64,000 bases of DNA from Ophelia neglecta (Eukaryota): NCBI GenBank assembly GCA_965285935.1, contig OZ260664.1, positions 47,616,001 to 47,680,000 of the forward strand, read 5' to 3'. Position numbers and translations under genes: made by a program. The notes under the pieces were generated by a model. The model was not told the origin of the DNA, did not search any database, and saw nothing but the letters and a program-made list of their open reading frames with translations. This document shows positions 2,235 through 60,785 of the stretch, in pieces. How positions within the stretch are numbered: the first letter of the stretch is position 1; each line of letters starts with the position of its first letter.

Positions 2235-3290
2235 TGAATCGGTGGTTCATGCAGACCGGGTCTAGAGACCAGCCATGTGTAATAAGTGGTATGCAGAGCG
2301 GGGTTAGAGACCTGTCATGTGTAATCAGTGGTTCATGCAGAGCGGGTCTAGAGACCAGTCACTTGTAATCAGTGCTTCAGGCAGAGCGGGTCTAGAGACC
2401 AGTCACTTGTAATCAGTGGTTAAAGCAGGGTGGGTCTAGAGACCTGTCATGTGTAATCAGTGGCTCATTTAGACCGGGTCTATAGACCAGCCATGTGTTA
2501 TCAGTGGTTCATGAAGACCGGGTCTAGAAACCTGTCATGTGTAATCAGTGGTTAAAGCAGGGTGGGTCTAGAGACCAGTCACTTGTAATCAGTGGTTAAA
2601 GCAGGGTGGGTCTAGACACCAATCATGTGTAATCAGTAGCTCATTTAGACCGGGTCTAGAGACCAGCCATGTGTTATCAGTGGGTTATGCAGAGCGGGTC
2701 TACAGACCTTTCACTTGTAATCAGTGGCTCATGTAGACCGGGTCTAGAGACCAGCCATGTGTATTCAGTGATTCATGCAGAGCGGGTCTAGAGACCTGTC
2801 ACGTGTAATCAGTGATTCATGCAGAGCGGGTCTAGAGACCTGTCATGTGTAATCAGTGATTCATGCAGAGCGGGTCTAGAGACCTGTCATGTGTAATCAG
2901 TGGCTCATTTAGACCGGGTCTAGAGACCAGCCATGTGTAATCAGTGGTTAAAGCAGGGTGGGTCTAGACACCAATCATGTGTAATCAGTGGTTAAAGCAG
3001 GGTGGGTCTAGACACCAATCATGTGTAATCAGTGGCTCATTTAGACCGGGTCTAGAGACAAGACATGTGTTATCAGTGGTTCATGCAGACCGGGTCTCGA
3101 GACCAGCCATTCGTATTCAGGGGTTCATGCAGAGCGGGTCTAAGGCCCAGTCACTTGTAATCAGTGGCACATGCAGAGCGGGGTAGAGACATGTCATGTG
3201 TAATCACTGGTTCATGCAGATCGGGTCTAGGCACCTGTCATGTGTTATCAGTGGTTCATGCAGAGCAGGTCAAGACACCTGTCATATGTT
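2235..3290. repeat. 44-bp minisatellite, about 24 copies
   Basis: Consensus atgtgtaatcagtggttcatgcagagcgggtctagagacctgtc; period 44 (gcagagcggg at 2821 and 2865); three recurring unit variants. Confidence 0.95.
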
Positions 3291-6245: not shown

Positions 6246-9200
6246 CATAGATAGCTTATAATTATAGGCCCTATAGGACTTTGACAACTCTTCTGCCAGT
6301 TAAACATACTTGAAGTTATCAGTTCCAGATTGCAGGTAGAACCAACTAACTTACTCACTGTTACCATTCTCTGCTACCTGGCACATCACCATTTTACTAA
6401 TGCGATCTCCACTTTTTACATACAAGGCCATTACAAATAGCAAATGTTTGTAATGTACAGCCCTGGGCGTTTATGTCTTTAAAAACAACTTGTTTTTCTG
6501 GTCTATGCAGAGACAATTTCAGATTATAATCTTGCTGTGAGCCTCTTGTAGTGGACCCCATCTCTCGGGGTTCCCTCAAATGCCATGACGGCGGGGGGGG
6601 GGGGGGGGGGGGTTATAAAGGGCTCAGAGTCGTATTATTATGTGGCTTCTTTACCACTAACATACAAATATTACATCCTTGAAAGTGGGCAGTACCTCCG
6701 AGCGTATTTACATTGTTGAAACGCGTACAGGGTAGAAGTCCTGCATACTGGAAGAGAGGTATACATGCAGGAAGAGACCAACGACTCTTGCTTGTATTCG
6801 TCCAAGATTTGATGCTGGATGATATACGAATTGGGGGTGGTGAATAACAAGCCCAGGGGAGTCATAAAACAACCGGTTTAATCGACATAGAAGTAGAACA
6901 GGACACGAAACCCAGCTGTCCTGCAATAAAGATATCGAAACAGATCCTACATACATATCTTGATATATCAATGCTTATGTATTCAATGATGCTAAACCCA
7001 AAGCGGCATCTTTACGGCCAGCTTGTCTGATAGAAAGCTAATCGAAGCTATTTGCAAATGCTCTACCAGAAAACGATTGTGGTTTTAAAATATCACTTAT
7101 TTTGAGTAGATGGGGCACTTGTTTTCTAATATGTTATGTGTCACACAGTTTAATAAATCACCAACAGCGAGCCCCGGAAGAAAAACGACGCACAGCGCTC
7201 AGCCAGAGCAAGCAGATTGCTACTGGGCTCAAATTTCATTGAGTGCTTCGCTGTTCACTTGTAAAGTTCGTATTGGAGATACCTTCCTGTTAACCATACT
7301 GTACGTATACAGAGTGAGGGGAGAGATATTGAAAACTGATTGGCTTGATACTTTAACTGAGAAGTTGATCAACAAAATTCAATTCGTTGTATAATGGAGA
7401 GAGTTTATAGAGGATCCACTTTAAGTCTGGTGAGTCGAATTTGGTTTCAACGTTGACAAAATAATGGACTAAAACGTGCGGGACCTTTCAATTGAAGTTA
7501 CATTCAAATTGGTATTTACTGTCAATGATTGGGTGCGATTTAAGGTAGGAGAAGGTGTGTGATTCTAGCATAGCGAAAACTGCTTTATTTGTATGGTGAT
7601 ATTTTTTATTGCTCTAGCCATGTCCGATGTTACCACCAGAATAACTGATTTGATGGCAACAGTTTCCCTCTACATTTTGTTTATTGTAATTTGGGTGTTG
7701 GAATTTTGTGTTTGGACTCACTTTGAATTGTGTTTTGTTTCCCAACACGGGAACGCAGTCCAACCTGAATAGAACCAAAGTACGAATAATATTGTTCTAG
7801 CTCATGAAAACTGATATTATAAAAACTTTCATAATATTGCATAATAATTTACCAGGTCATATTTTATTTCAAGGTAATATTTCTACTTTGCCTTCCATTT
7901 GTTTTGTGTTTTGGTCAAGCCTTTATTCAAGATTGATAAAGCAGACGACAATATAAAAAGCACCGCTTGACACAATGTTTGTGCCTCGCTATTAGAATCT
8001 TCGATCTAGGCCGCCCAGGGAGGCTCTTTGCCAATTTTGCTAGAAGCAAGAGCCATACGAAATTAAATAGACCGATGTTAGCAGTCTAGATTTTTGATCT
8101 TTTCACAAAGTCATTGAAGAAGTACACGATAAGCGTTAACTAAATATAAACTAGACTGTTATTTTTATTATTTTCAAGGCAAAGCCGATGATAGGCAGAT
8201 GATATACATAGGCCTAGATAAGACTCTAAAGACCAACTATATAGGACACTTTGTGCATGGTGTCTCCCCACTTTATTATGTTTTGATGTTGTTATTGATT
8301 GATGCCTGGTTGTTTACTGAATATATTTACTTTGTTTACTACGATTTCTTATATACAAACTGCTTTTAACCTGATCGTTTTTATATATTTAACCATTATT
8401 TATCTTAGTTATCTCAGCAAAGGCAAAATTATTGAAAGTTTAATCGGCTGGAATGTCTTCCAATTTTCAACCACTGTGTTCACTTTATTCAAATGTCAGT
8501 CGTATAACCTGTTAGGCTAACTTAATTTCCCCGAAACTTCTAATATCTCTAAAGATTCAAAGGAAGCAGAGTAAACTTTCTCCAAGTCTGTATCTGACAG
8601 ATAGTTGACACTGTCTAAAATCCTTATCAATTACGTGCATGTCTTGTTACGGTTAAGAATTTGAGTTGATGCTGAAATTTTATATGTTAGGTTATTACTA
8701 TTCCCCCTCCCTCCTTTTTTTCTACACTGGTCCAGCCTTAACCCTATAATATATGTTTGTACTTCATATACTGTATCTTGTAATTATCTCGCAATTGTCT
8801 CGTAACAGGTTTTACATGCGATTTATACAGCTTTTCTAGCTGTGATTAAAATCGAATAATGTCTCGCCGTGTACCTATTGCGCAGCATAAATCATTGAAT
8901 GGTGGGCGGCCGTTCATTTGAAACATAATATGGCCCTCCTAGCGGGAAATGGCAGATTATGCTCAAATTATTGGTCTACCTTTCACATACCTTGCTCTGG
9001 ATTAAAGTATTATCTATAGTTTATCGCTTGCTCTTGTTTTTGAACATTACTGATTACATGACTACTCCCCACTTATCTAGTAGAGGGGATGGGTGACTAC
9101 TGCTGTGTCTGAAATACCTTCTAATAGAAAATAAAACGCCGATAAAACATCAGCGATGAAAATGGCAAACGGTAGCTTCACTATGTCGGCAGTTTGTTAT

Positions 9201-23900: not shown

Positions 23901-26900
23901 ACATCCATCACAAATCTGCATTATTAATTTATCAACTGAAAACCACATGAATTGTGCCTGTGTTTGATATTAATTTACACTAACTTGACATGGGGTAAAG
24001 TTTTTGTCTACTTGATACTTTTCCAATCGTTGACTCACAGGAGCTTATCTCAATCCAATTGCGCTAATATACATTTTGAGGGGTTTGGCCGCTTCGTAAG
24101 TGCAAGGAAGATAATAGATAATTTCAGGAAAGCTATTTATTTTTCTTGTCTTGGTGGGAGTTCCATTGAAACTCTACTTATGATCGCCAATAAAAAACAC
24201 ACACAAAGTGTAATCTTCGTAACACGGCATTAATTTATCTCCTTCATGTAAGAGAAACGCATTGTTTTTTAACATTAAAATCTGGGAATTTGCATTGCCA
24301 AGAAAAATGTGTCTGATCATCCACTGACAGGTACTCGTGGGGTGTACCATTTATATTGAATTCGCTTATCGCTTTACATACGCACTTAGTTTCCTTAGAA
24401 AACCTACTATTTGTCCCAACTCGTAGCTAGTCATATTACGTCCTATAAGATAAAAGATTGCTTTTATTTATTTATTAAAAATAGTTATTCACATCCCCAC
24501 CCTTTATATGGTTTCCTCTTACACAAAAAGCCAGCATTTAAAGACATACAATGGGAAACTCTATTGATGCAGATTACCAATACAACCTTAAACTCTCCAT
24601 TTTATTAAACAGAACCCAATCACAGCATTCAGATTATGTCACTACTTTGTATCTTAATTTGCTCGGACCATACGTTTTAGGTCTATTATTGTGGTGTAAA
24701 GAATCCATGCATAATTAATATGACAAATAAGCTATTTGATAATGATGGGGCCTTATCTTATATTTGTATATATTTCTTGATTTTTCTAGATGATTATTGG
24801 TTATGAAGTACGAATTCATCGTAGAGTTGAAACTCATTTAATTAGCGCAGTAACTTACAAGATCGTATATGACTATATGAGAGGTTGATAAAAGCAGAAC
24901 CCACAGTGACTTATCCTGAAAAACTGTTGCAGCTGGTACAAATTGTGCAGCATTCATCTGACACTAAATGGTTATGTGCATTTGACGTGCACAGTTCTGT
25001 TTTTTATTGCTCGTAGTCCATTAAACTGTGTGTATGATGTGGGTATATTAAATTGTAGATACCAATTGAGATATATGTCTTGAAGAAACCTAGTATAAAT
25101 ATTTTACTGTGTATTAAGGACAAACCTCTGCAAATATTAGGGAACAAAATAGAAATCATAGTTTACCTGATGAGGTGCATTACTAGTATAAAAGATTCTA
25201 TGTATAACGAGAATACTCTGCATGGCAGTAAGGGCTAGTTAGGACCCATGTCCAATGATTCATCGCTCAGTTCATAAAGCCGTTTAGAAATCCAATTTGA
25301 CACATCGTCCTGGGTGTTGTCACCAATGACAACTAAACAGGAAATTTATTAAATGGGTATCTTAACTACCGCCAACATCTCCTTAATGAGCATACAATTA
25401 GCTGTGCTGGTAATTTGGTATCAAAACATTGAACACTTTGTCTATAGAATAATAGTTTACTACTACCACCCTAGTGAGTCAAAATGGTCATTTTTACCTT
25501 TGATTGGTTTCTAGCATTTAAGGCCTTCCCCCCAGAATGCATCGGATGCAAGCCAGCTTCAGAGATATGTCTAGACACTCTGAAACTGGGAGTACCAGAC
25601 CACTATACAGTCACAAAAAGTTAGTTCAGCCTAGCCCTATCATTTCCCCTATGCACACATGAGAACTATGTATTCTGACACAGTCTTATTCGTTCCAGCA
25701 TGGTTTATCGCCACGTACTTGATTATAAGAAATCAGAATGTTCATGCTATCACAAATTTTTATATGAATAAATATGGTATCTTAATATATCGACATATCG
25801 TTGTGTTTGAAATACGTACAAGGCAATAGTCCCCATTGATCATGTTTGTGTGAACGTCATTCGATAAGCGACCGATTAGACACTTAACGTGGTAACAACC
25901 TCAGATTAATTCATTTAACAGTTGACATCCATTTATTTGTTCTTATGAGGAAAATATACGCAAATTCAACATTGCGGTTCTGCAGAACCCTTTAGCCTCT
26001 CATCCAGTTTCGAGTGTGTTGGCACACATGTTCATCCTCTTTATTCTACTATCGTGCCATTGTTGATCTCTTCTTTAAATGAAATCTTATATTTGTCGTG
26101 TGCTTTTGAGAAGACGGTGGTTCCCGAAACAACGATGATATTTCAAAAGCTAATTATTCATAAATAAATTTGTTTTGACTGCCAAGTGTCCATTTATGTT
26201 TTTTAAAACTAACCTTCGTCACAAACTGTGCCCTCCGATGAGACTGTTGTCTGCAAGAACTGTTTCCTTCGTTAAACATTGGTACCTCTTTACTCCCACA
26301 TATCTACCGCTACACCCACCAAAGCAGCTCCGCAACTGTCTGCCAATGGGAGCACATAAAAACCGGTGGTGGAAACTCCGCAGACAAACCAAAAACGTAG
26401 ATCAATAATGGCCTACTACAAACGGTCCGAATGCGACACTTCATAGTTAACTGTCTTTCATCTTTACGTTGTTTTACGGGTTAACATTTTGATGAATTCA
26501 TCTAGAATGCAATCTCATCGGATTTTATTCACCGACAATTAGCGCAGAAGTGTCCCATTTTAGTACTGACTATCCTAGACGTGCATTATTATATTTTCAA
26601 AGCTGTGTTCTTGTCACCTTTACTTGTCTGAATCTTACTAAAGAGAAATGAACAATAAATTCCAAAAATTTGGATAAGTAGACATTTTGAACTCGAAAAT
26701 ATATTCATTTTTGGCCAGTTTGCACCTTATAAACACTGGGGACCGTTCCATCGAACGGAGTATGATTTATTGATGTATACACTTTAAATTTAGTATTGAA
26801 TAAAAAAACTGTATTTATGTCATAATAGAATTTATGCTAAAAGTTTTAAAGTAATGAAATGATATTTTCAAATATATAATCACTATGAGCCAAGTGTTTC

Positions 26901-34046: not shown

Positions 34047-35443
34047 TTGATATGTAGAGATGCATTTAAACTGGGTGAAGTGCGTCAATTGGAGATGTTG
34101 AAATGTCGAATATCACCATCAAGTATGGTGAAGTTTAGGTCTGTTTGCCCCATGAACGACTGCCGAGATTAAATCGAGTTTTAACTGGGGAAAGTACAGT
34201 AAAATTAAATTATTTACTGTTTTATGATTCATCTAGGATATGCTAATTTCATTTGTTGAATCGGACATGATGATCAATTCCACAGTGGAACAATTTTCAT
34301 TAACCATTCGGGTACGTACAATGTAATTACATTATGCATGCCTTGTATCTATAAGCTAATAAGCATATAAAGTAGTTGACTATCCGCCTCCTCGTGTTCT
34401 CATAAAAATGTCCTGCTTGTTCATTTAAAAGTTGATGTTTCCTCCATTACAAGCCACCATTATTTTGCCCTTTCGCGTGCTTCAAAAATCGCATAGGCAC
34501 AAGGGGACATTTACTTGATTACAGATTTATAATACCTCCTAGCTGTTCTAGGCATGAGGCACAGGAACCAATAGCTGTTTTGGTCTAACAGGGACCCTTT
34601 ATTTATTTGACTCAATTGGACTTCTCCCATATTGATATTTCCATTGAAGCATTGATGCACATATATGCATAAGTAGGAAATGAAACACTTATTGTCATTT
34701 GTGAATAATCTAAAAGTTTGGAGCAATGTATGAAATGTACGTTATTCTTTCATTGTTCTCTTTCATTGATGGTGCCTACAATATGTTACATTTTCTTATA
34801 AATAACCAAACTTTTCAGTTCTCTCGCAATTAGCAATATATATGACATTTAGTTTGCTATAGGTATACATGTATTATTTCCCAATTATTGGCGTTTTCCT
34901 CTCCTGACGCTCACATGATAATATTAATATATTGGCGTCGCAAAACTGGCGCTTAAAACTTATTTTGCAGTAATCCATAATAGCAAGGACATTTACTTTA
35001 AAAATTCTCTCCAGTGTCTTTAGCTTGCCAAGTGATGATCCAATTACACTTGGGAGTGTTTTTTATCCGATACCAACTATAAGGGTTAGCAACTACAAAC
35101 GTTTGTTGATATTTCATGATAAGGGAATACAATTCGATAGTGCCAAAAAACAGCCCGTTATATAATCATGTAAAACTACACAATACGATTAAATGCCAAT
35201 TTAAAGCTCGTTCGTGTTAAACAATGCAGCTTAGCCATATGTCTTAACAGTTACTTAACAGTTACTTAAGTAAATATGCCTTTCAGTCAAGTTAATAGGC
35301 ATATTCGCTGAATAACATGAACGGCTGCAGTCGTTCATGGGGCAAACTTACCTAAACTTCACCACACTTGATGGTGATATTCGACATTTCAACAGCTCCA
35401 AATGACGCACTTCACCCAGTTTAAATGCATCTCTACATATCAA
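34047..35443. repeat. 117-bp inverted repeat pair (34047-34163 / 35327-35443) flanking a ~1.16-kb spacer
   Basis: ttgatatgtagagatgcatttaaactgggtgaagtgcgtca...gccccatgaacgactgc matches its reverse complement at 35327-35443 with only a few mismatches. Confidence 0.9.
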
Positions 35444-50899: not shown

Positions 50900-53800
50900 G
50901 TGAGTCACAAGGCAAATGTGCTCTTGAAAAACACACACAAATATAGCCTTTTTTTGCATGGAGAAGAAATAATTGGACGGAGATTGTCGGTTTTGCCTCA
51001 AGTTCAAAAGACTAACACAAATTCATTTCCTTTATACAATTAGGTAACTTACCAGTACAAAGTAAAAATATAGTATATCGTAATATTTTACTTATAAATT
51101 GAATTTGAAAACAGGTATGTTTCGGAACGCACATTCTCTCCAGCTGTTGGGAAACACGCTCCAACTGTACCGTTGGGGCATGAAAGGGTTATCGAGTGAA
51201 CTTTACTATTTGGCTATGAGGGAGATCTAAACAGACATTTTCTTCGGTTTAGATATATACGTATGATTATTAAGTAGGATATTCAGGGGAATGTATTCAG
51301 GCCTGAAGTACCTTTTTCCATTTTATTTACCAAACTCTTGAGTTTGGACAAAAGAAAATAAATAAGGAAAGAAATTTATGATCACCAATCACAGTCTCAG
51401 ACGTTTTACCTAAGGTTGAACAAAAAAATAGCACATCTATTGGTCAAGCAAGTCCGCCCTGTGTACGTCGGCGGTATTACGTAGCTAGATTGGAATTCAA
51501 AATGAGGCGTTTTTAGTAAGAGCTGGGCATATAAATTTCACAGAGTGAATTACGCGAGCCTGCAGTGCTGTACATTTAGGACACGGCAAAATAAACTGGA
51601 GTGTTACATTTTGGAATCGAGTATTATTGAATATCGGAAATGAGATATAACAGGACAGTAAGCTACCCGTCCCGTACCTCTTGCTAAGCGCGTTCTGTTC
51701 TAGCCAGGGCGTTTTCCAAATTGCATATGAAGCAGGAAACAAGCCTTGCCTATGTAGCCTGAAAGAAAATACCGTTTAGTCTTATTCGCACTTTGCATTA
51801 AAGGGCGTTGTATTTTCATATCTTTCCTTATCTAAAACTAATTAAAAGTTTAGGTAAACTTGAGTAGTGCCAAATACATCCGAGTTGTCATCGATTTTAA
51901 CAACTTCACCTTTTCTGATCCCGATTAAAAGTGTCGTTCAACATTTCGTGACTGGTGTCCAATGGCAAGGTCTGCCGTACTGGTGCCGTGAGAACAAGAA
52001 CACAGTATGAAAGAAAAAGTCTTATCTGTTCTAATTCTAAAAGCTGCAAAATGGTGATAGACTTACGTTACACTAAACTACTGCAAAATCATAAATATTC
52101 ACGTTATTCGACATTTTCTACTTTCATTGACACGCACCATAATCATGCAATTGTTTGAAGGCCAACTAAAAATGGTATCGAGCGCCGCAGAAGTCGGTGG
52201 AAATATGAGCTACTACTATGGATCGGGTGGTATGGCACTTGAAGTGATTTTTGATAAGAACCTCGTTGAATTCAAGTGTAGGCTGTTGAGCATTCATGAA
52301 TTATGTATCTGGCCAAACAATTCAAATCGACAAAGGCCAGAATCAATAGCCGTACAATGAATATTATAAAACAGAAGTCTGTTGGAAAATAGAAAGGAAA
52401 TGCATATCTAAATTCGTGGTAAGTCAATCGAGGTAAATTCAAATGTTCATATTCCGAACTGGCCGGATTGGTCAAAGGTGTGCTTTGTTTCGAAAATAAC
52501 ATTAGAAGAAATGTGTTTTATAAACGGGAAAATACAAATTATTTGGACTTCTTGTTTTATGTATTAAACATAACTGACCCAGTACAAAATATTTCAGGGA
52601 CTCAAAAGACAACGTTCTTCGCTAGGGCGTGATCCCAATAGTCCATATAAATAAAGATACTAACCTTGCCAAAAAGCATGAAAGAAAATATCACTTTGTC
52701 TAATTTCCACTTCGCATTTAACGGTATTGGTTTTTAATATATTTCCTCATCTAAAAGAATTGAAATTTTAGGTAAAATTTAGTTACCGTATGAGTCGCAT
52801 GTATCCTATACAAAGGAAACATATAATTTATATAGGCCTCTTCCTTAATGTAGTAAACTTTAACGTTATCAGACACAGTACAATGCACTATAGTTGAAGG
52901 TCTACTTGTCCATGTCATATCAGAAGCACTGCAAAATGGAGGCAAACAGTGTTTCGTCCATACTTCCAGGAAGTATCCTGTAAAAATAATAGCCTATAAA
53001 AGCTTGGACATATAAATTATCGAGGGATGGGTGAAAGTTTGATGTAGCGGCTTCAATAACTCTCTTGTAATGTTGTATTGCAGTTCGGCACACAATGGAC
53101 TGTTCATATACCAGTGGCAGGACCGAGAAAAGCCCGCAAACATCCCAAGTCCTCAAGGTTTGGCTGATTATTGAAACTTTAATTTAATAATTATTGCATA
53201 TGATTGCTAAGGTGCCATTTCCAGACCTACTTAAGATAATATTAATGGAATACAATAATCCCACATTGAGAAACCTTGGAGCTATTATAAACACATCGTT
53301 AGCTAATTGTTTTGAGCGTCTAATGCTACTTGTTTAGGGTTTTAACTCTTGAGTTTTGGCATTATCTCTTAAAAGTCGTCAATTTGTTAAATGGAAAATA
53401 CAAATGAAATTATGAGCCTTGAATAATAGGGATTTCAATTTTGCATATTCTTGTCTTTGCAGCGGTACAATTTCAAATCTGTATTCAGAACAGATACAAA
53501 CTAAACAAGAAATATCGGAAATTAATACCCCACACTCCGGATGGCGAGCCAATCGAACCCACGCAGTACACGCCGGACCAGAAAACTCTCACCCAACAGG
53601 CAAAGGTAAGTTAATAACTCACACTCCGGATGGCGAGCCAATCGAACCCACGCAGTACACGCCGGACCAGAAAACTCTCACCCAACAGGCAAAGGTAAGT
53701 TAATAACTCACACTCCGGATGGCGAGCCAATCGAACCCACGCAGTACACGCCGGACCAGAAAACTCTCACCCAACAGGCAAAGGTAAGTGAATACCTCAC

Positions 53801-56800
53801 ACTCCGGATGGCGAGCCAATCGAACCCACGCAGTACACGCCGGACCAGAAAACTCTCACCCAACAGGCAAAGGTAAGTTAATACCTCACACTCCGGATGG
53901 CGAGCCAATCGAACCCACGCAGTACACACCGGACCAGAAAACTCTCACCAAACAGGCAAAGGTAAGTTAATACCTCACACTCCGGATGGCGAGCCAATCG
54001 AACCCACGCAGTGCACGCCGACCAGAAAACTCTCACCCAACAGGCAAAGGTAAGTTAATAACTCACACTCCGGATGGCGAGCCAATCGAACCCACGCAGT
54101 ACTCGCCGGACCAGAAAACTCTCACCGAACAGGCAAAGGTAAATTAATAACTCACACTCCGGATGGCGAGCCAATCGAACCCACGCAGTACACGCCGACC
54201 AGAAAACTCTCACCGAACAGGCAAAGGTAAGTTAATACCTCACACTCCGGATAGCGAGCCAATCGAACCCACGCAGTACACGCCGGACCAGAAAACTCTC
54301 ACCCAACAGGCAAAGGTAAGTTAATACCTCACACTCCGGATGGCGAGCCAATCGAACCCACGCAGTACACGCCGGACCAGAAAACTCTCACCCAACAGGC
54401 AAAGGTAAGTTAATAACTCACACTCCGGATAGCGAGCCAATCGAACCCACGCAGTACACACCGGACCAGAAAACTCTCACCCAACAGGCAAAGGTAAGTT
54501 AATACCTCACACTCCGGATGGCGAGCCAATCGAACCCACGCAGTACACGCCGGACCAGAAAACTCTCACCCAACAGGCAAAGGTAAGTTAATAACTCACA
54601 CCCCGGGTGGCGAGCCAATCGAACCCACGCAGTACACGCCGGACCAGAAAACTCTCACCCAACAGGCAAAGGTAAGTTAATACCACACACTCCGGATGGC
54701 GTGCCAATCGAACCCACGCAGTACACGCCGGACCAGAAAACTCTCACCCAACAGGCAAAGGTAAGTTAATACCACACACTCCGGATGGCGAGCCAATCGA
54801 ACCCACGCAGTACACGCCGGACCAGAAAACTCTCACCCAACAGGCAAAGGTAAGTTACTAACTCACACCCCGGGTGGCGAGCCAATCGAACCCACGCAGT
54901 ACACGCCGGACCAGAAAACTCTCACCAAACAGGCAAAGGTAAGTTAATACCACACACTCCGGATGGCGTGCCAATCGAACCCACGCAGTACACGCCGGAC
55001 CAGAAAACTCTCACCCAACAGGCAAAGGTAAGTTAATACCTCACACTCCGGATGGCGAGCCAATCGAACCCACGCAGTGCACGCCGGACCATAAAAGGCA
55101 AAGTTAAGTTAATATCACACACTCATGGAATCGAATTATTCAGGCTTAATAGATCCTATGTCAACCATGCAATTTCGCCCGAATTTAAATTTCACCAAGT
55201 TCGAGAAGACATAAAATCGCCCCCCCCCCCCCCATCCTGGGCATAAATAATAAACACTCCCTTAACTTAAATAAATTATAAAAAGATAATATTATCTCGC
55301 AAGATTAGATCATGGTTTTTGTTAACTCTCTTTCCTTTACGTTTTCTTCCCCTATAGTTCTCGATTCCTGCTCTGTATCAATTTTGATATAATATTTTCA
55401 ACAACATGTTTATAATTCTCATTGTGAGAATATTGTGTTTTTTATTTATGAAATATAATCTACGCAATTTATGTTGTAATAGTTGGCAGCCGAAGCTGAA
55501 AATGAAGACAACGTGGCCGAACAAAGGCGTCAACACGCTAAGAGAGTAAGATATGGCGAAGTTATCCAGGTCAGTCGTCATGTTTTCAATGACTTATGAA
55601 AGTTCAGCAAGCCGTGTTCGATTATTCTTTCAAGCACTGGAAGTCATAATTCATTGTTTTGTTCATTTCACTCAGCAGATGTGCAAGCTTCTCGTTTAAA
55701 CATGAACCACGTGTTATCTATTTTCATCTGCAGCTCAAGCACATCTTCACCCAAAAGTTTATTCATGTCAGCACCACTCAGACCAGTCGACGGGACAAAA
55801 ACAACATGCTGGTAAGTATAAATATATTTCAATCAGACTATATAGGTAATCGAGTGTCAAGTTATCTTAGAACAGAAATTTGATTTATAAAGCTCACCTT
55901 TAGATACTGAGTGCAACAGGCTAACAAGTTTTGTCTTGTTTCTTTATAAATTTGGTAGAGAAGTGTTCTTTTCGTTTCTGATTTGGTTGTCTTAAACTCA
56001 TCCATATAAACACCAATTTACTATAAACTTTTCCTCATCAGGTTCATCTACAGGACTGCAACGCCAAGCATGCCATGTTCAGGATACTGCCGAGATACAA
56101 AGTCAAATCTGAAGGCGAATTTGTAAGTTTTAACCAACTTCAACCTAAGGTATTGAAAAGCATTTATTCATCAACGCGCTAAATATTTGTCATTCAATTA
56201 CAGGTCCAAATATTTGACCAAATTATCCTTGAGAGCGTGAAATCTCCTGGCCAATACTATCATGCCAGTGCAGCATGGAAAATTGACCATTTTACCATAG
56301 GGTCAGGAAAAGCTTATTCTCTTTTTAATTCATCAAACGATAAAATGCATATATACTCATCGGTACTGCACACGTTGAAAAATGGAATTATAATATGTAC
56401 GAATGATGAGAGGGATTGATTTAATTTCATAGGTCAGAACTAAATTTGGGGATCCAACCAGCGGGTTTCACGGTGGTGAAAAACTACAGACCTGCAGAAG
56501 ATGCCAAAACACTTGTCAAGGTAAAATGGATTTGCTCCGTCCTGTTTATCCTATTAGCTTAAATGAAAAGTAGATTTTTCAATGTTGTTATAATTTTATT
56601 AAGCATAGACAATCAAAATGACTTTCAAGATAGCTTCAAAAAGTATTCCATAGTACATGATTCGGCTTATTCCATAATTTAATTTAATGAAACGTATACA
56701 TATGTAATTGACCATAAGCCCAAATATGAAATTGTATTATCAGTTTTTGCAATGAAATTAAATGATGTTGGATTTTGACGTTATATAAAGGGTCGTTCAC

Positions 56801-59800: not shown

Positions 59801-60785
59801 CTTTCTCGCACTATGCAGTTAATTTACCCCTGCTGCCCTATCAGTTGCCTCAGGATGTGCCCAACATGTCGAGCAAGGCACGGCAAGAACTGAGGGTAAC
59901 ATCTTCTGGTCGTGCAGACCGTCATTCCGTCATTGCAGGGTGGATCCGCCATCAGACTGTTTCATAAAGAGCTGGAGGCCTATCTCGTCGCCGAGGGACT
60001 GTTTGATGAAGAAATTATGGAAGATGGTGAGCAAAAAAAGTGGAATTTTATTTATTCATTAAAAGGGGAATTTATTTCATTTGTTCAAATGAATCCATTC
60101 CCCATGTATAGTTTTTAGTGATTTATTTAAAGGGGAGTTTTATTTTATCGATTTATTTAAAGGGGAATTTTATTTTATCGATTAAAAGGGCAAGTTTACT
60201 GTTTCATTTAATCATTTAAAATAACCACTTTTCCCTTGTCATCGTCATGTGTTCTGTGTTTGTTCGCCAAGGCCTAGCCCATGCAAAATAAGAATTGTTG
60301 ACATTCGGTTCTTCAAACAGCAAATCAGTTTTTTCATAATTGCCTCTATTCAGTGCATTTGCGTATCCGGGAAGTGGATCAGCTCGTCCCGAAGTCCCTC
60401 TACCCCTCGACATCAGGGAACACCTACTGGCAGATCGAGGCCGAGTCCAGCCTACTACACGGTGAGCCGGCTCAATGGGGCAACATTCCCCCCTTCTTAA
60501 TACAAATAATTGACAATCACTTCATCAGGCATGCCTGTTCTTTTTTGATTGGTTTTCTTCCAAACAATATCCATGATACTATTAAACATAGCAAATTGTT
60601 ATTTGAATAATGACAGTGGTTGTTTACTTTCCATTTTAGGTGAAGTCATCCGATGGGAACAACAAGTGAGGTTCCGCCACATTTGTACCCGACAGTATCT
60701 TTGCATAACCGCAGACCGGCGGGTCACTCTGACGCCAGACGCAAAGGATCCGCGGACAGTGTTCAGGCTACATCCGGTTATAAAG
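50817..60785 (+). CDS. Divergent inositol 1,4,5-trisphosphate receptor-like (ITPR/RyR superfamily) Ca2+ release channel, 5' part; 11 coding exons, 358 aa in window, 3' end outside window
   Basis: join(50817-50899,53084-53157,53463-53605,55483-55569,55734-55811,56042-56122,56204-56301,56433-56520,59939-60026,60354-60461,60640-60785) = 1074 nt, open, all introns GT..AG with matching phases. Motifs are collinear with IP3R1 recalled from memory: FLCIGDFISLF~FLHIGDICSLY, FQICIQNRY~FKLCPMNRY, RYGEVIQLKH~QYGNVIQLLH, FRILPRYKVKSEG~FYIQPFYKLRSIG, GGSAIRLFH~GGDVVRLFH, RFRHICTRQYL~RFKHLATGHYL. No symbol given because orthology to canonical ITPR is doubtful. Confidence 0.93.
53084..53157 (+). CDS. ITPR-like coding exon 2 (S/SAHNGLFIYQWQDREKPANIPSPQ/A)
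   Basis: Acceptor ttgtattgcag, donor G|GTTTGG. 74 nt (1+72+1) exactly reconciles the phase 2 end of exon 1 with the phase 1 start of exon 3. Confidence 0.85.
53463..53605 (+). CDS. ITPR-like coding exon 3 (A/VQFQICIQNRYKLNKKYRKLIPHTPDGEPIEPTQYTPDQKTLTQQAK)
   Basis: Acceptor ttcttgtctttgcag, donor AAG|GTAAGT at 53606. Its 3' 84 nt form the first unit of the tandem array. Confidence 0.9.
53522..55135 (+). repeat. 89-bp minisatellite spanning the exon 3/intron 3 boundary; 17 intact units plus a degenerate 18th
   Basis: Unit ttaatacctcacactccggatggcgagccaatcgaacccacgcagtacacgccggaccagaaaactctcacccaacaggcaaaggtaag. GT donors at 53606, 53695, 53784, 53873, 53962, 54050, 54139, 54227, 54316, 54405, 54494, 54583, 54672, 54761, 54850, 54939, 55028. 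Confidence 0.98.
55216..55265 (-). repeat. Terminus of the same TTAA-type MITE family as 14868-14920, inside ITPR-like intron 3
   Basis: poly-C-atcctgggcataaataataaacactcccttaa. Confidence 0.5.
55483..55569 (+). CDS. ITPR-like coding exon 4 (LAAEAENEDNVAEQRRQHAKRVRYGEVIQ)
   Basis: Acceptor ttgtaatag, donor CAG|GTCAGT, 87 nt, phase 0/0. Resembles IP3R [28 protein letters not shown]. Confidence 0.9.
55734..55811 (+). CDS. ITPR-like coding exon 5 (LKHIFTQKFIHVSTTQTSRRDKNNML)
   Basis: Acceptor ttttcatctgcag, donor CTG|GTAAGT, 78 nt. Confidence 0.9.
56042..56122 (+). CDS. ITPR-like coding exon 6 (VHLQDCNAKHAMFRILPRYKVKSEGEF)
   Basis: Acceptor tttttcctcatcag, donor TTT|GTAAGT, 81 nt; followed by an 81-nt intron. 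Confidence 0.9.
56204..56301 (+). CDS. ITPR-like coding exon 7 (VQIFDQIILESVKSPGQYYHASAAWKIDHFTI/G)
   Basis: Acceptor caattacag, donor GG|GTCAGG, 98 nt, phase 0/2. Resembles IP3R [21 protein letters not shown]. Confidence 0.88.
56433..56520 (+). CDS. ITPR-like coding exon 8 (G/SELNLGIQPAGFTVVKNYRPAEDAKTLVK)
   Basis: Acceptor aatttcatag, donor AAG|GTAAAA, 88 nt, phase 2/0. Confidence 0.87.
59048..59098. repeat. 20-bp tandem repeat, 2.5 copies
   Basis: (ggccccaggagtagggttgg)n in intron 8. Confidence 0.85.
59939..60026 (+). CDS. ITPR-like coding exon 9 (GGSAIRLFHKELEAYLVAEGLFDEEIMED/V)
   Basis: Acceptor gtcattgcag, donor G|GTGAGC, 88 nt, phase 0/1. Start of the region equivalent to the IP3-binding core. 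Confidence 0.9.
60121..60180. repeat. 30-bp tandem duplication in intron 9 with degenerate flanking copies
   Basis: atttatttaaagggga(g/a)ttttattttatcg x2; related copies near 60050 and 60181. Confidence 0.85.
60354..60461 (+). CDS. ITPR-like coding exon 10 (V/HLRIREVDQLVPKSLYPSTSGNTYWQIEAESSLLH/G)
   Basis: Acceptor cctctattcag, donor G|GTGAGC, 108 nt, phase 1/1. Resembles HVFLRTT...ATSSKALWEVE. Confidence 0.9.
60640..60785 (+). CDS. ITPR-like coding exon 11 (G/EVIRWEQQVRFRHICTRQYLCITADRRVTLTPDAKDPRTVFRLHPVIK)
   Basis: Acceptor tttccattttag, donor AAG|GTAACA, 146 nt, phase 1/0. MIR-type RFRH..T..YL motif. Confidence 0.9.

Follow-up and report, generated by a model that had tools for sequence, protein, structure and literature searches.

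When the end of an exon and its splice donor are repeated many times within the intron that follows, which of the donors will be used? The question is raised by a window of 64,000 nucleotides (nt) from the genome of Ophelia neglecta (assembly GCA_965285935.1, contig OZ260664.1, positions 47,616,001 to 47,680,000), where the third exon of a gene resembling IP3 receptors runs into an array of 17 consecutive donors. Unless another locus is named, positions are those of this window, and the gene and its array lie on the forward (+) strand. We consider it probable that the array is a young and functionless minisatellite spanning an exon boundary, that its host gene is intact and constrained, and that the first donor is used while the rest are silent.

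The anatomy of the array is simple. Tandem Repeats Finder reported it as the sole array there, at 53522-55096, with a period of 89, 17.7 copies and 96% matches; its summary lists no indels. Each unit combines the 84 coding nt that end exon 3 (LIPHTPDGEPIEPTQYTPDQKTLTQQAK) with GTAAG, the first 5 nt of intron 3. A motif scan recovered 17 GT donors, CAAAG/GTAAGT in 16 cases and CAAAG/GTAAAT in one (donor G at 54139), followed by an 18th that has decayed to CAAAG/TTAAGT (55104). The preliminary description of the locus had proposed both this composition of the unit and this count of intact and decayed donors; the scan agrees with the two claims, and the repeat finder and the alignment of units support the first. 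Cutting the array at its donors gives 17 full units, 15 of them 89 nt long and two (units 6 and 8) 88 nt long. After them come an 18th unit, which carries a 13-nt deletion and measures 76 nt, and a degenerate fragment of a 19th. By repeat detection and unit alignment, the 17 full units and the 76-nt 18th occupy 53522-55108. The decayed 18th donor (TTAAGT) and the degenerate partial 19th unit form an eroded 3' edge at 55104-55140.

The authentic 5' splice site, AAG/GTAAGT at 53606-53611, lies in unit 1 at a position conserved in homologs and can form 8 contiguous base pairs with U1 under the standard pairing scheme. It is followed in register by the 16 pseudo-donors found by the motif scan in the intron (53695-55033), 15 of which are identical to it. 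Their first G is at 53695, 53784, 53873, 53962, 54050, 54139 (the GTAAAT variant), 54227, 54316, 54405, 54494, 54583, 54672, 54761, 54850, 54939 and 55028. Since a strict donor motif has a background of ~0.6% in an 89-nt segment, as judged from 134 kb of genome that we sampled, 17 donors in register are not due to chance. The structure is thus a boundary-spanning ("mirage"-type) minisatellite, arranged head-to-tail, with the genuine junction in unit 1 and the donor reiterated in the intron. The units differ by ~2% from their own consensus, and paired variants common to units 13-14 and 16-17 show that part of the array grew by duplication of a 3-unit block. We considered whether the junctions might be recursive splice sites, in which a polypyrimidine tract and AG directly precede GTAAGT, and rejected this because the bases upstream of AAAG/GTAAGT are rich in purines and poor in T (2 of 20 nt). 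A search of Rfam found no known structured RNA in the region.

The array exists in the raw data. We examined the only three public runs that cover the stretch, all of DNA and from one sample, which may be the source of the assembly, as short-read contigs in a k=31 graph. Contigs enter from the left and stop at 53560, 30 nt past the sole base specific to the exonic unit (53530), which is the exact point where a 31-mer graph must branch. They re-enter from the right at 55007, they contain the variants of interior units, and words from the repeat occur at 5-17x the depth of the flanks. The number of copies, ~18, is that of the assembly, as short contigs do not span the array. The reads also contain a second allele that, near the eroded 3' edge (55007-55328), carries 33 extra nt inserted at 55125 and shows ~5% substitutions; elsewhere in the flanks, reads and assembly are ~1% different. 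In the tail of intron 3, a run of 14 C (55221-55234) shows a length difference of 5 nt in the contigs and is probably a polymorphic homopolymer.

Where did the unit come from? Across the 762-Mb genome, it matched the array and only one other place, 7.2 Mb from it, where it occurs once and is 86% identical; this rules out an origin by exonisation of a satellite or transposon, as the unit is not dispersed. The place belongs to a collinear paralog, whose exon 3 it is, on the same chromosome and downstream of the window (C7, ~54.84 Mb; loci L007-L014, with exon 3 at 1445-1587 of L007). This exon has the same acceptor and ends in GCAAAG/GTACGA, a weak donor (AAG/GTACGA), and the paralog's intron 3 is 696 nt long and without repeat. 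The gene of a related species (L018) encodes an exon 3 peptide 83% identical and an exon 4 peptide identical to those of the window, with a single donor CGG/GTGAGT, an intron 3 of 108 nt and no tandem repeat. In a distant homolog (L015), this exon likewise has one donor only. In spliced annelid models, ..QAK is directly joined to [VF]AA.AEN.DN, which confirms the joint between exons 3 and 4. Because the paralog and both homologs have single donors and lack the array, the coding exon is ancestral and the array derived and lineage-specific. The array arose in this lineage only, out of the final 84 nt of exon 3 and the first 5 nt of the intron.

The host gene was reconstructed by defining exons as blocks conserved with the collinear paralog. 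Homology searches were run exon by exon, and exons were joined only for counts of substitutions and stops. The coding part of exon 1 (50817-50899, 83 nt, conserved with the paralog) starts with an ATG at 50817 and ends in ..CCAG/gtgagt; annelid IP3R-like models have an N-terminus that matches its peptide, MSDFLCIGDF... Exon 2 (53084-53157, 74 nt, between ag and gtttgg) is conserved in the paralog and in the gene of the related species. Exon 3 (53463-53605, 143 nt) has its acceptor and end in common with the paralog, and the final 84 nt of the exon (53522-53605) double as unit 1 of the array; the same end is found in both homologs and in nine genomic fragments of open reading frames that end in ..AK/V. 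Intron 3 (53606-55482, from the exon boundaries) measures 1877 nt, of which ~1.53 kb are array, and its unique tail (~55141-55482) has a T-rich tract and a tag/ acceptor at the end. The junction between 53605 and 55483 given in the preliminary description has thus the right coordinates. Exon 4 (55483-55569, 87 nt, LAAEAENEDNVAEQRRQHAKRVRYGEVIQ) is the one whose peptide is identical in the related species. The conserved blocks continue with exons 5 (55734-55811, 78 nt), 6 (56042-56122, 81 nt) and 7 (~56204-56302, 99 nt), the 3' end of the latter being approximate. AG/GT boundaries occur at exons 1-6, and the bases past 56302, the approximate end of exon 7, are not GT. Read in order, exons 1-7 give 215 codons without a stop.

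The family of the gene was judged from its N-terminal exons. Its nearest named homologs are from the annelids Paralvinella and Helobdella, which makes an annelid the probable carrier of the gene, and the best match of the exon 3 peptide in protein libraries is 83% identical. The model XP_009022303.1 of Helobdella robusta, which has exons 1-5 in common with the window gene, matches the N-terminal domain of IP3 and ryanodine receptors (Pfam PF08709, 1.3e-16) and the solved suppressor domains of IP3R3 (6e-14) and IP3R1 (7e-11). Further along the window, the exon at 60642-60785 scored 24.7 bits for MIR, with a cut-off of 25.6. The exon 3 peptide aligns with residues ~57-100 of IP3R3, and its second half varies in length and sequence among homologs. 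We take this segment to be the helical "arm" of the suppressor domain. By these homologies, the host is an IP3-receptor-like gene, of the family of Ca2+ release channels, in line with the earlier proposal that it encodes a Ca2+ channel. Two other protein matches were discarded. One (P0019, 2820 aa), considered as a full-length receptor, is an unrelated bacterial repeat protein, and the other (P0011, 789 aa), with a repeated ..IPYGGDGEPIQCGPW.. motif and six stretches aligned to the exon 3 peptide, is a translated satellite of another genome whose resemblance we judged to be due to chance.

This reconstruction fixes the consequences of the choice of donor. Exons 1-3 sum to 300 nt, exactly 100 codons, and reading past donor 1 adds V and S before a stop at codon 103 (AAG GTA AGT TAA). 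The immediate in-frame stop had been pointed out before, and translation of the exons confirms it. Every downstream donor spliced to exon 4 leads to this same stop.

Over exons 2-7 (558 nt), the ratio of nonsynonymous to synonymous differences per site (pN/pS) was 0.05 relative to the gene of the related species, where synonymous sites are saturated (pS 0.80), and 0.12 relative to the paralog (pS 0.45). A three-way split of pN assigns ~0.006 to the branch of the window copy and ~0.049 to that of the paralog, which evolved ~8x faster at amino-acid sites. The array-bearing gene is thus the conservative, slow-evolving copy, and its exons are under purifying selection. The copies in the intron differ. 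Exonic unit 1 departs from the consensus of the array by one synonymous base, and the variant sites of intronic units are 3 synonymous and 8 nonsynonymous. Unit 4 carries a stop (TTA>TGA), and units 6 and 8 carry a 1-nt deletion. The stop, the frameshift and the excess of nonsynonymous variants indicate that the intronic copies are not translated and decay neutrally. The donor motif shows 1 change in 153 nt, compared with ~2.4% in the rest of the unit, and it is not significantly better conserved, many of the variants being non-independent.

Together, these observations are consistent with the following history. The last 84 nt of exon 3 and the first 5 nt of intron 3 would have been duplicated in tandem and later expanded to ~18 copies by slippage or unequal exchange, the block duplication of 3 units included. 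A formerly short intron would have been lengthened by ~1.5 kb, while the exon would still end in the first copy and be spliced from the first donor. The 16 donors behind it would be pseudo-sites within the intron, mostly or entirely unused, and the array, devoid of function, would be a neutral or slightly deleterious by-product of a high turnover of minisatellites in this genome. Use of the first donor fits best the precedents (F7, LMNB2, PDGFA and the amphioxus mirages), the purifying selection on the host and the neutral decay of the copies.

Several points weigh against this reading. Our analyses show the anatomy of the array, its derived and lineage-specific origin, the intactness and constraint of its host and the neutral decay of its intronic copies, and from these we infer which donor is used. 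The outcome cannot be predicted with certainty because the donors here, all 17 of which we counted as perfect-consensus (16/17 GTAAGT, 1/17 GTAAAT), are so strong. In F7 minigenes, usage of pseudo-sites reached 70-90% once mutation had brought their consensus value to 100 (PMC1557585). When two strong 5' sites compete, work from the Eperon lab shows that the intron-proximal, downstream one is preferred (PMC3413131). The account given in PMC1557585 also indicates that the nearest one or two pseudo-sites are used in CBS and IFI6. Finally, the array is young, with units ~2% from their consensus, such that the long-term constraint on the gene is no proof that the array has long been tolerated.

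These points could be turned into a different explanation, in which equal donors compete and a sizeable share of transcripts is spliced from a downstream donor, runs into the TAA of codon 103 and is lost to nonsense-mediated decay (NMD), array length setting the productive fraction. We regard this as rather unlikely and keep it as a minority possibility because all donors are of the perfect-consensus type. The 17 strong sites, the stop directly past donor 1, the competition of optimised pseudo-sites in F7 minigenes, the use of the nearest pseudo-sites in CBS and IFI6, and the preference for the intron-proximal member of strong pairs all speak for competition. Yet LMNB2, PDGFA, F7 and the amphioxus mirages splice normally, the host has evolved under tighter constraint than its paralog, and conservation of the donor motif does not significantly exceed that of the remaining unit sequence. 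The stronger proposal, that the share of NMD depends on copy number, so that array length works as a heritable dial for how much of an intracellular Ca2+ release channel is made, seems to us unlikely to a further degree. If it were true, the dial and the further arrays of this kind in the genome would suggest a duplication process that seeks out junctions and whose products selection can act on. The preference for intron-proximal sites might also be taken to the extreme. Intron definition would then favour the last donors, those nearest to the acceptor, leaving an effectively null allele of a gene that would be turning into a pseudogene buffered by its paralog. The short ancestral intron (108 nt in the related species) and the other introns of the gene, of 81-305 nt, suggest intron definition, and the paralog is indeed present. 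However, the seven exons in the window are open, their AG/GT boundaries are intact at exons 1-6, there was almost no amino-acid change on the branch of the window copy while the paralog changed faster, and the exonic unit differs from the consensus by a synonymous base only. A null allele is therefore quite improbable.

Two further explanations have very little in their favour. The array might be a source of micro-exons, if internal AG acceptors were to add in-frame segments of 57, 39, 24 or 6 nt (reiterated YTPDQKTLTQQAK or AK insertions) and lengthen a variable loop of the suppressor domain. Each of the four AGs in the unit's coding part ends a codon, which keeps the frame, and the peptide falls in a segment of variable length when aligned to IP3R3. 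But T is scarce upstream of the candidate acceptors, with 1-3 in the 20 nt before the AG, compared with 6-12 at the real acceptors of the gene, the implied introns would measure 32-83 nt, and no homolog has a repeated peptide. In units 6 and 8, the frameshifting deletion falls within both the 39-nt and the 57-nt segment, unit 4 has its stop, and the variants are mostly nonsynonymous. Given these T-poor acceptors, frameshift, stop and nonsynonymous variants, we rejected micro-exons as a conserved function and find them highly improbable in any form. It is just as hard to believe that the assembly created the array, the DNA of the animal having none or a far shorter one. Long near-identical arrays are indeed difficult to assemble, no read or contig spans this one, and the three runs come from a single sample, maybe that of the assembly. 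Nevertheless, contigs end at the required branch point and resume beyond the array, interior variants and the excess of repeat words are in the reads, and an internal structure of variants with an eroded edge is atypical of collapse or expansion. We thus retain use of the first donor, with a silent array behind it, as the probable state of the gene.

Other repeats of this genome put the array in context. We found 12 minisatellites in 134 kb of genome, and the donor motif in the focal array only, numbers that are too low for a test of enrichment. Minisatellites are thus frequent here and mostly not junction-derived. Nevertheless, a different gene on the same chromosome (C7, 78.76 Mb; locus L019) contains two arrays of comparable build. 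One (2421-2949 of that locus) has 5.2 copies of 102 bp, the unit being an open frame that ends in GGAAG/GTAGGT, and the other (8015-8859) is a degenerate array of 35-129 bp on ACAG/GTAGGG. They share with the window array the construction from an exon end plus its donor, and their origin is independent. Arrays without splice-site or donor motifs include a large minisatellite in the window (2237-3289, 44 bp x 24, 81% matches) and two young ones in the region of the paralog (joined loci L008-L014), of 48 bp x 14 (64363-65035, 99% matches) and 36 bp x 14.6 (25198-25718). The window also contains 117-nt inverted repeats (34047-34163 and 35327-35443), 96% complementary and 1163 nt apart, which are possibly the ends of a small transposable element, and a compound (TTGA)n / (TTCA)n microsatellite of ~54 units (45093-45306).

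The interest of the locus lies less in its mechanism than in its clarity. It is a clean natural case, outside vertebrates and amphioxus, of an exon end and its donor amplified into a long array, and the donor is unusually strong, a perfect consensus present 17 times. Since any wrong donor leads to an immediate stop, the outcome should be easy to score. This might provide a natural test between the rules that the most upstream site wins, as in F7, and that the intron-proximal site wins, as in the work of the Eperon lab. It is also a warning for genome annotation, because gene finders may choose the wrong donor at such loci.

The architecture itself belongs to a class that has been known since the 1990s, and the window array is a further case that requires no new mechanism. 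One close relative is the variable number tandem repeat (VNTR) of intron 7 of human F7, whose first monomer spans the exon/intron boundary and where identical pseudo-donors come in register behind the authentic one. That VNTR has 5-9 copies of 37 bp with identical donors, and only the most upstream one is used (PMC1557585, Borensztajn et al. 2006). Like the array described here, it is intronic, and it is polymorphic. In F7, however, the unit consists of 4 nt of exon and 33 nt of intron with a weak donor (TGG/gtgggt), instead of 84 and 5 nt in ~18 copies with a perfect-consensus donor, and use of the first site rests there on experiments, whereas here we infer it. Human LMNB2 (100 bp x 10-15) and intron 4 of human PDGFA (81 bp x 16-18), which according to the studies cited in PMC1557585 use only the authentic site, resemble the window array very closely in unit size and copy number, as far as these are given there, with a junction reiterated through most of the intron. 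They are vertebrate genes in which, by the same account, splicing was checked experimentally, whereas our array is read from sequence.

The proposal that CBS offers a precedent for competing donors that span a boundary is borne out by the account in PMC1557585. There, CBS is described with 15-20 repeats and use of the authentic site and the two nearest pseudo-sites, and IFI6 (6-16) with 25 pseudo-sites and the same usage, the authentic site and the two nearest. The 31-bp VNTR of human CBS intron 13 and the 12-nt minisatellite of human IFI6 thus share with our array the boundary-spanning unit and the multiple donors. The difference is that the nearest pseudo-sites are really used in these genes, whereas here any downstream donor leads to an immediate stop. 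In IFI6, the use of pseudo-sites is presumably in frame.

Among invertebrates, the natural comparison is with the mirages of amphioxus (Adh3, globins, TnC, PGBD5), which duplicate exon/intron boundaries in tandem, much as minisatellites do, with units of 10-160 bp in several genes of a genome, and which reportedly leave normal splicing undisturbed (PMC3087553, PMC3902484). They belong to another phylum and are backed by reverse transcription PCR and by length differences between haplotypes. Their arrays undergo concerted evolution inside and are less homogenised at the edges (PMC3087553, PMC3902484). The eroded 3' edge of the window array corresponds to this usual state of array edges (PMC3087553).

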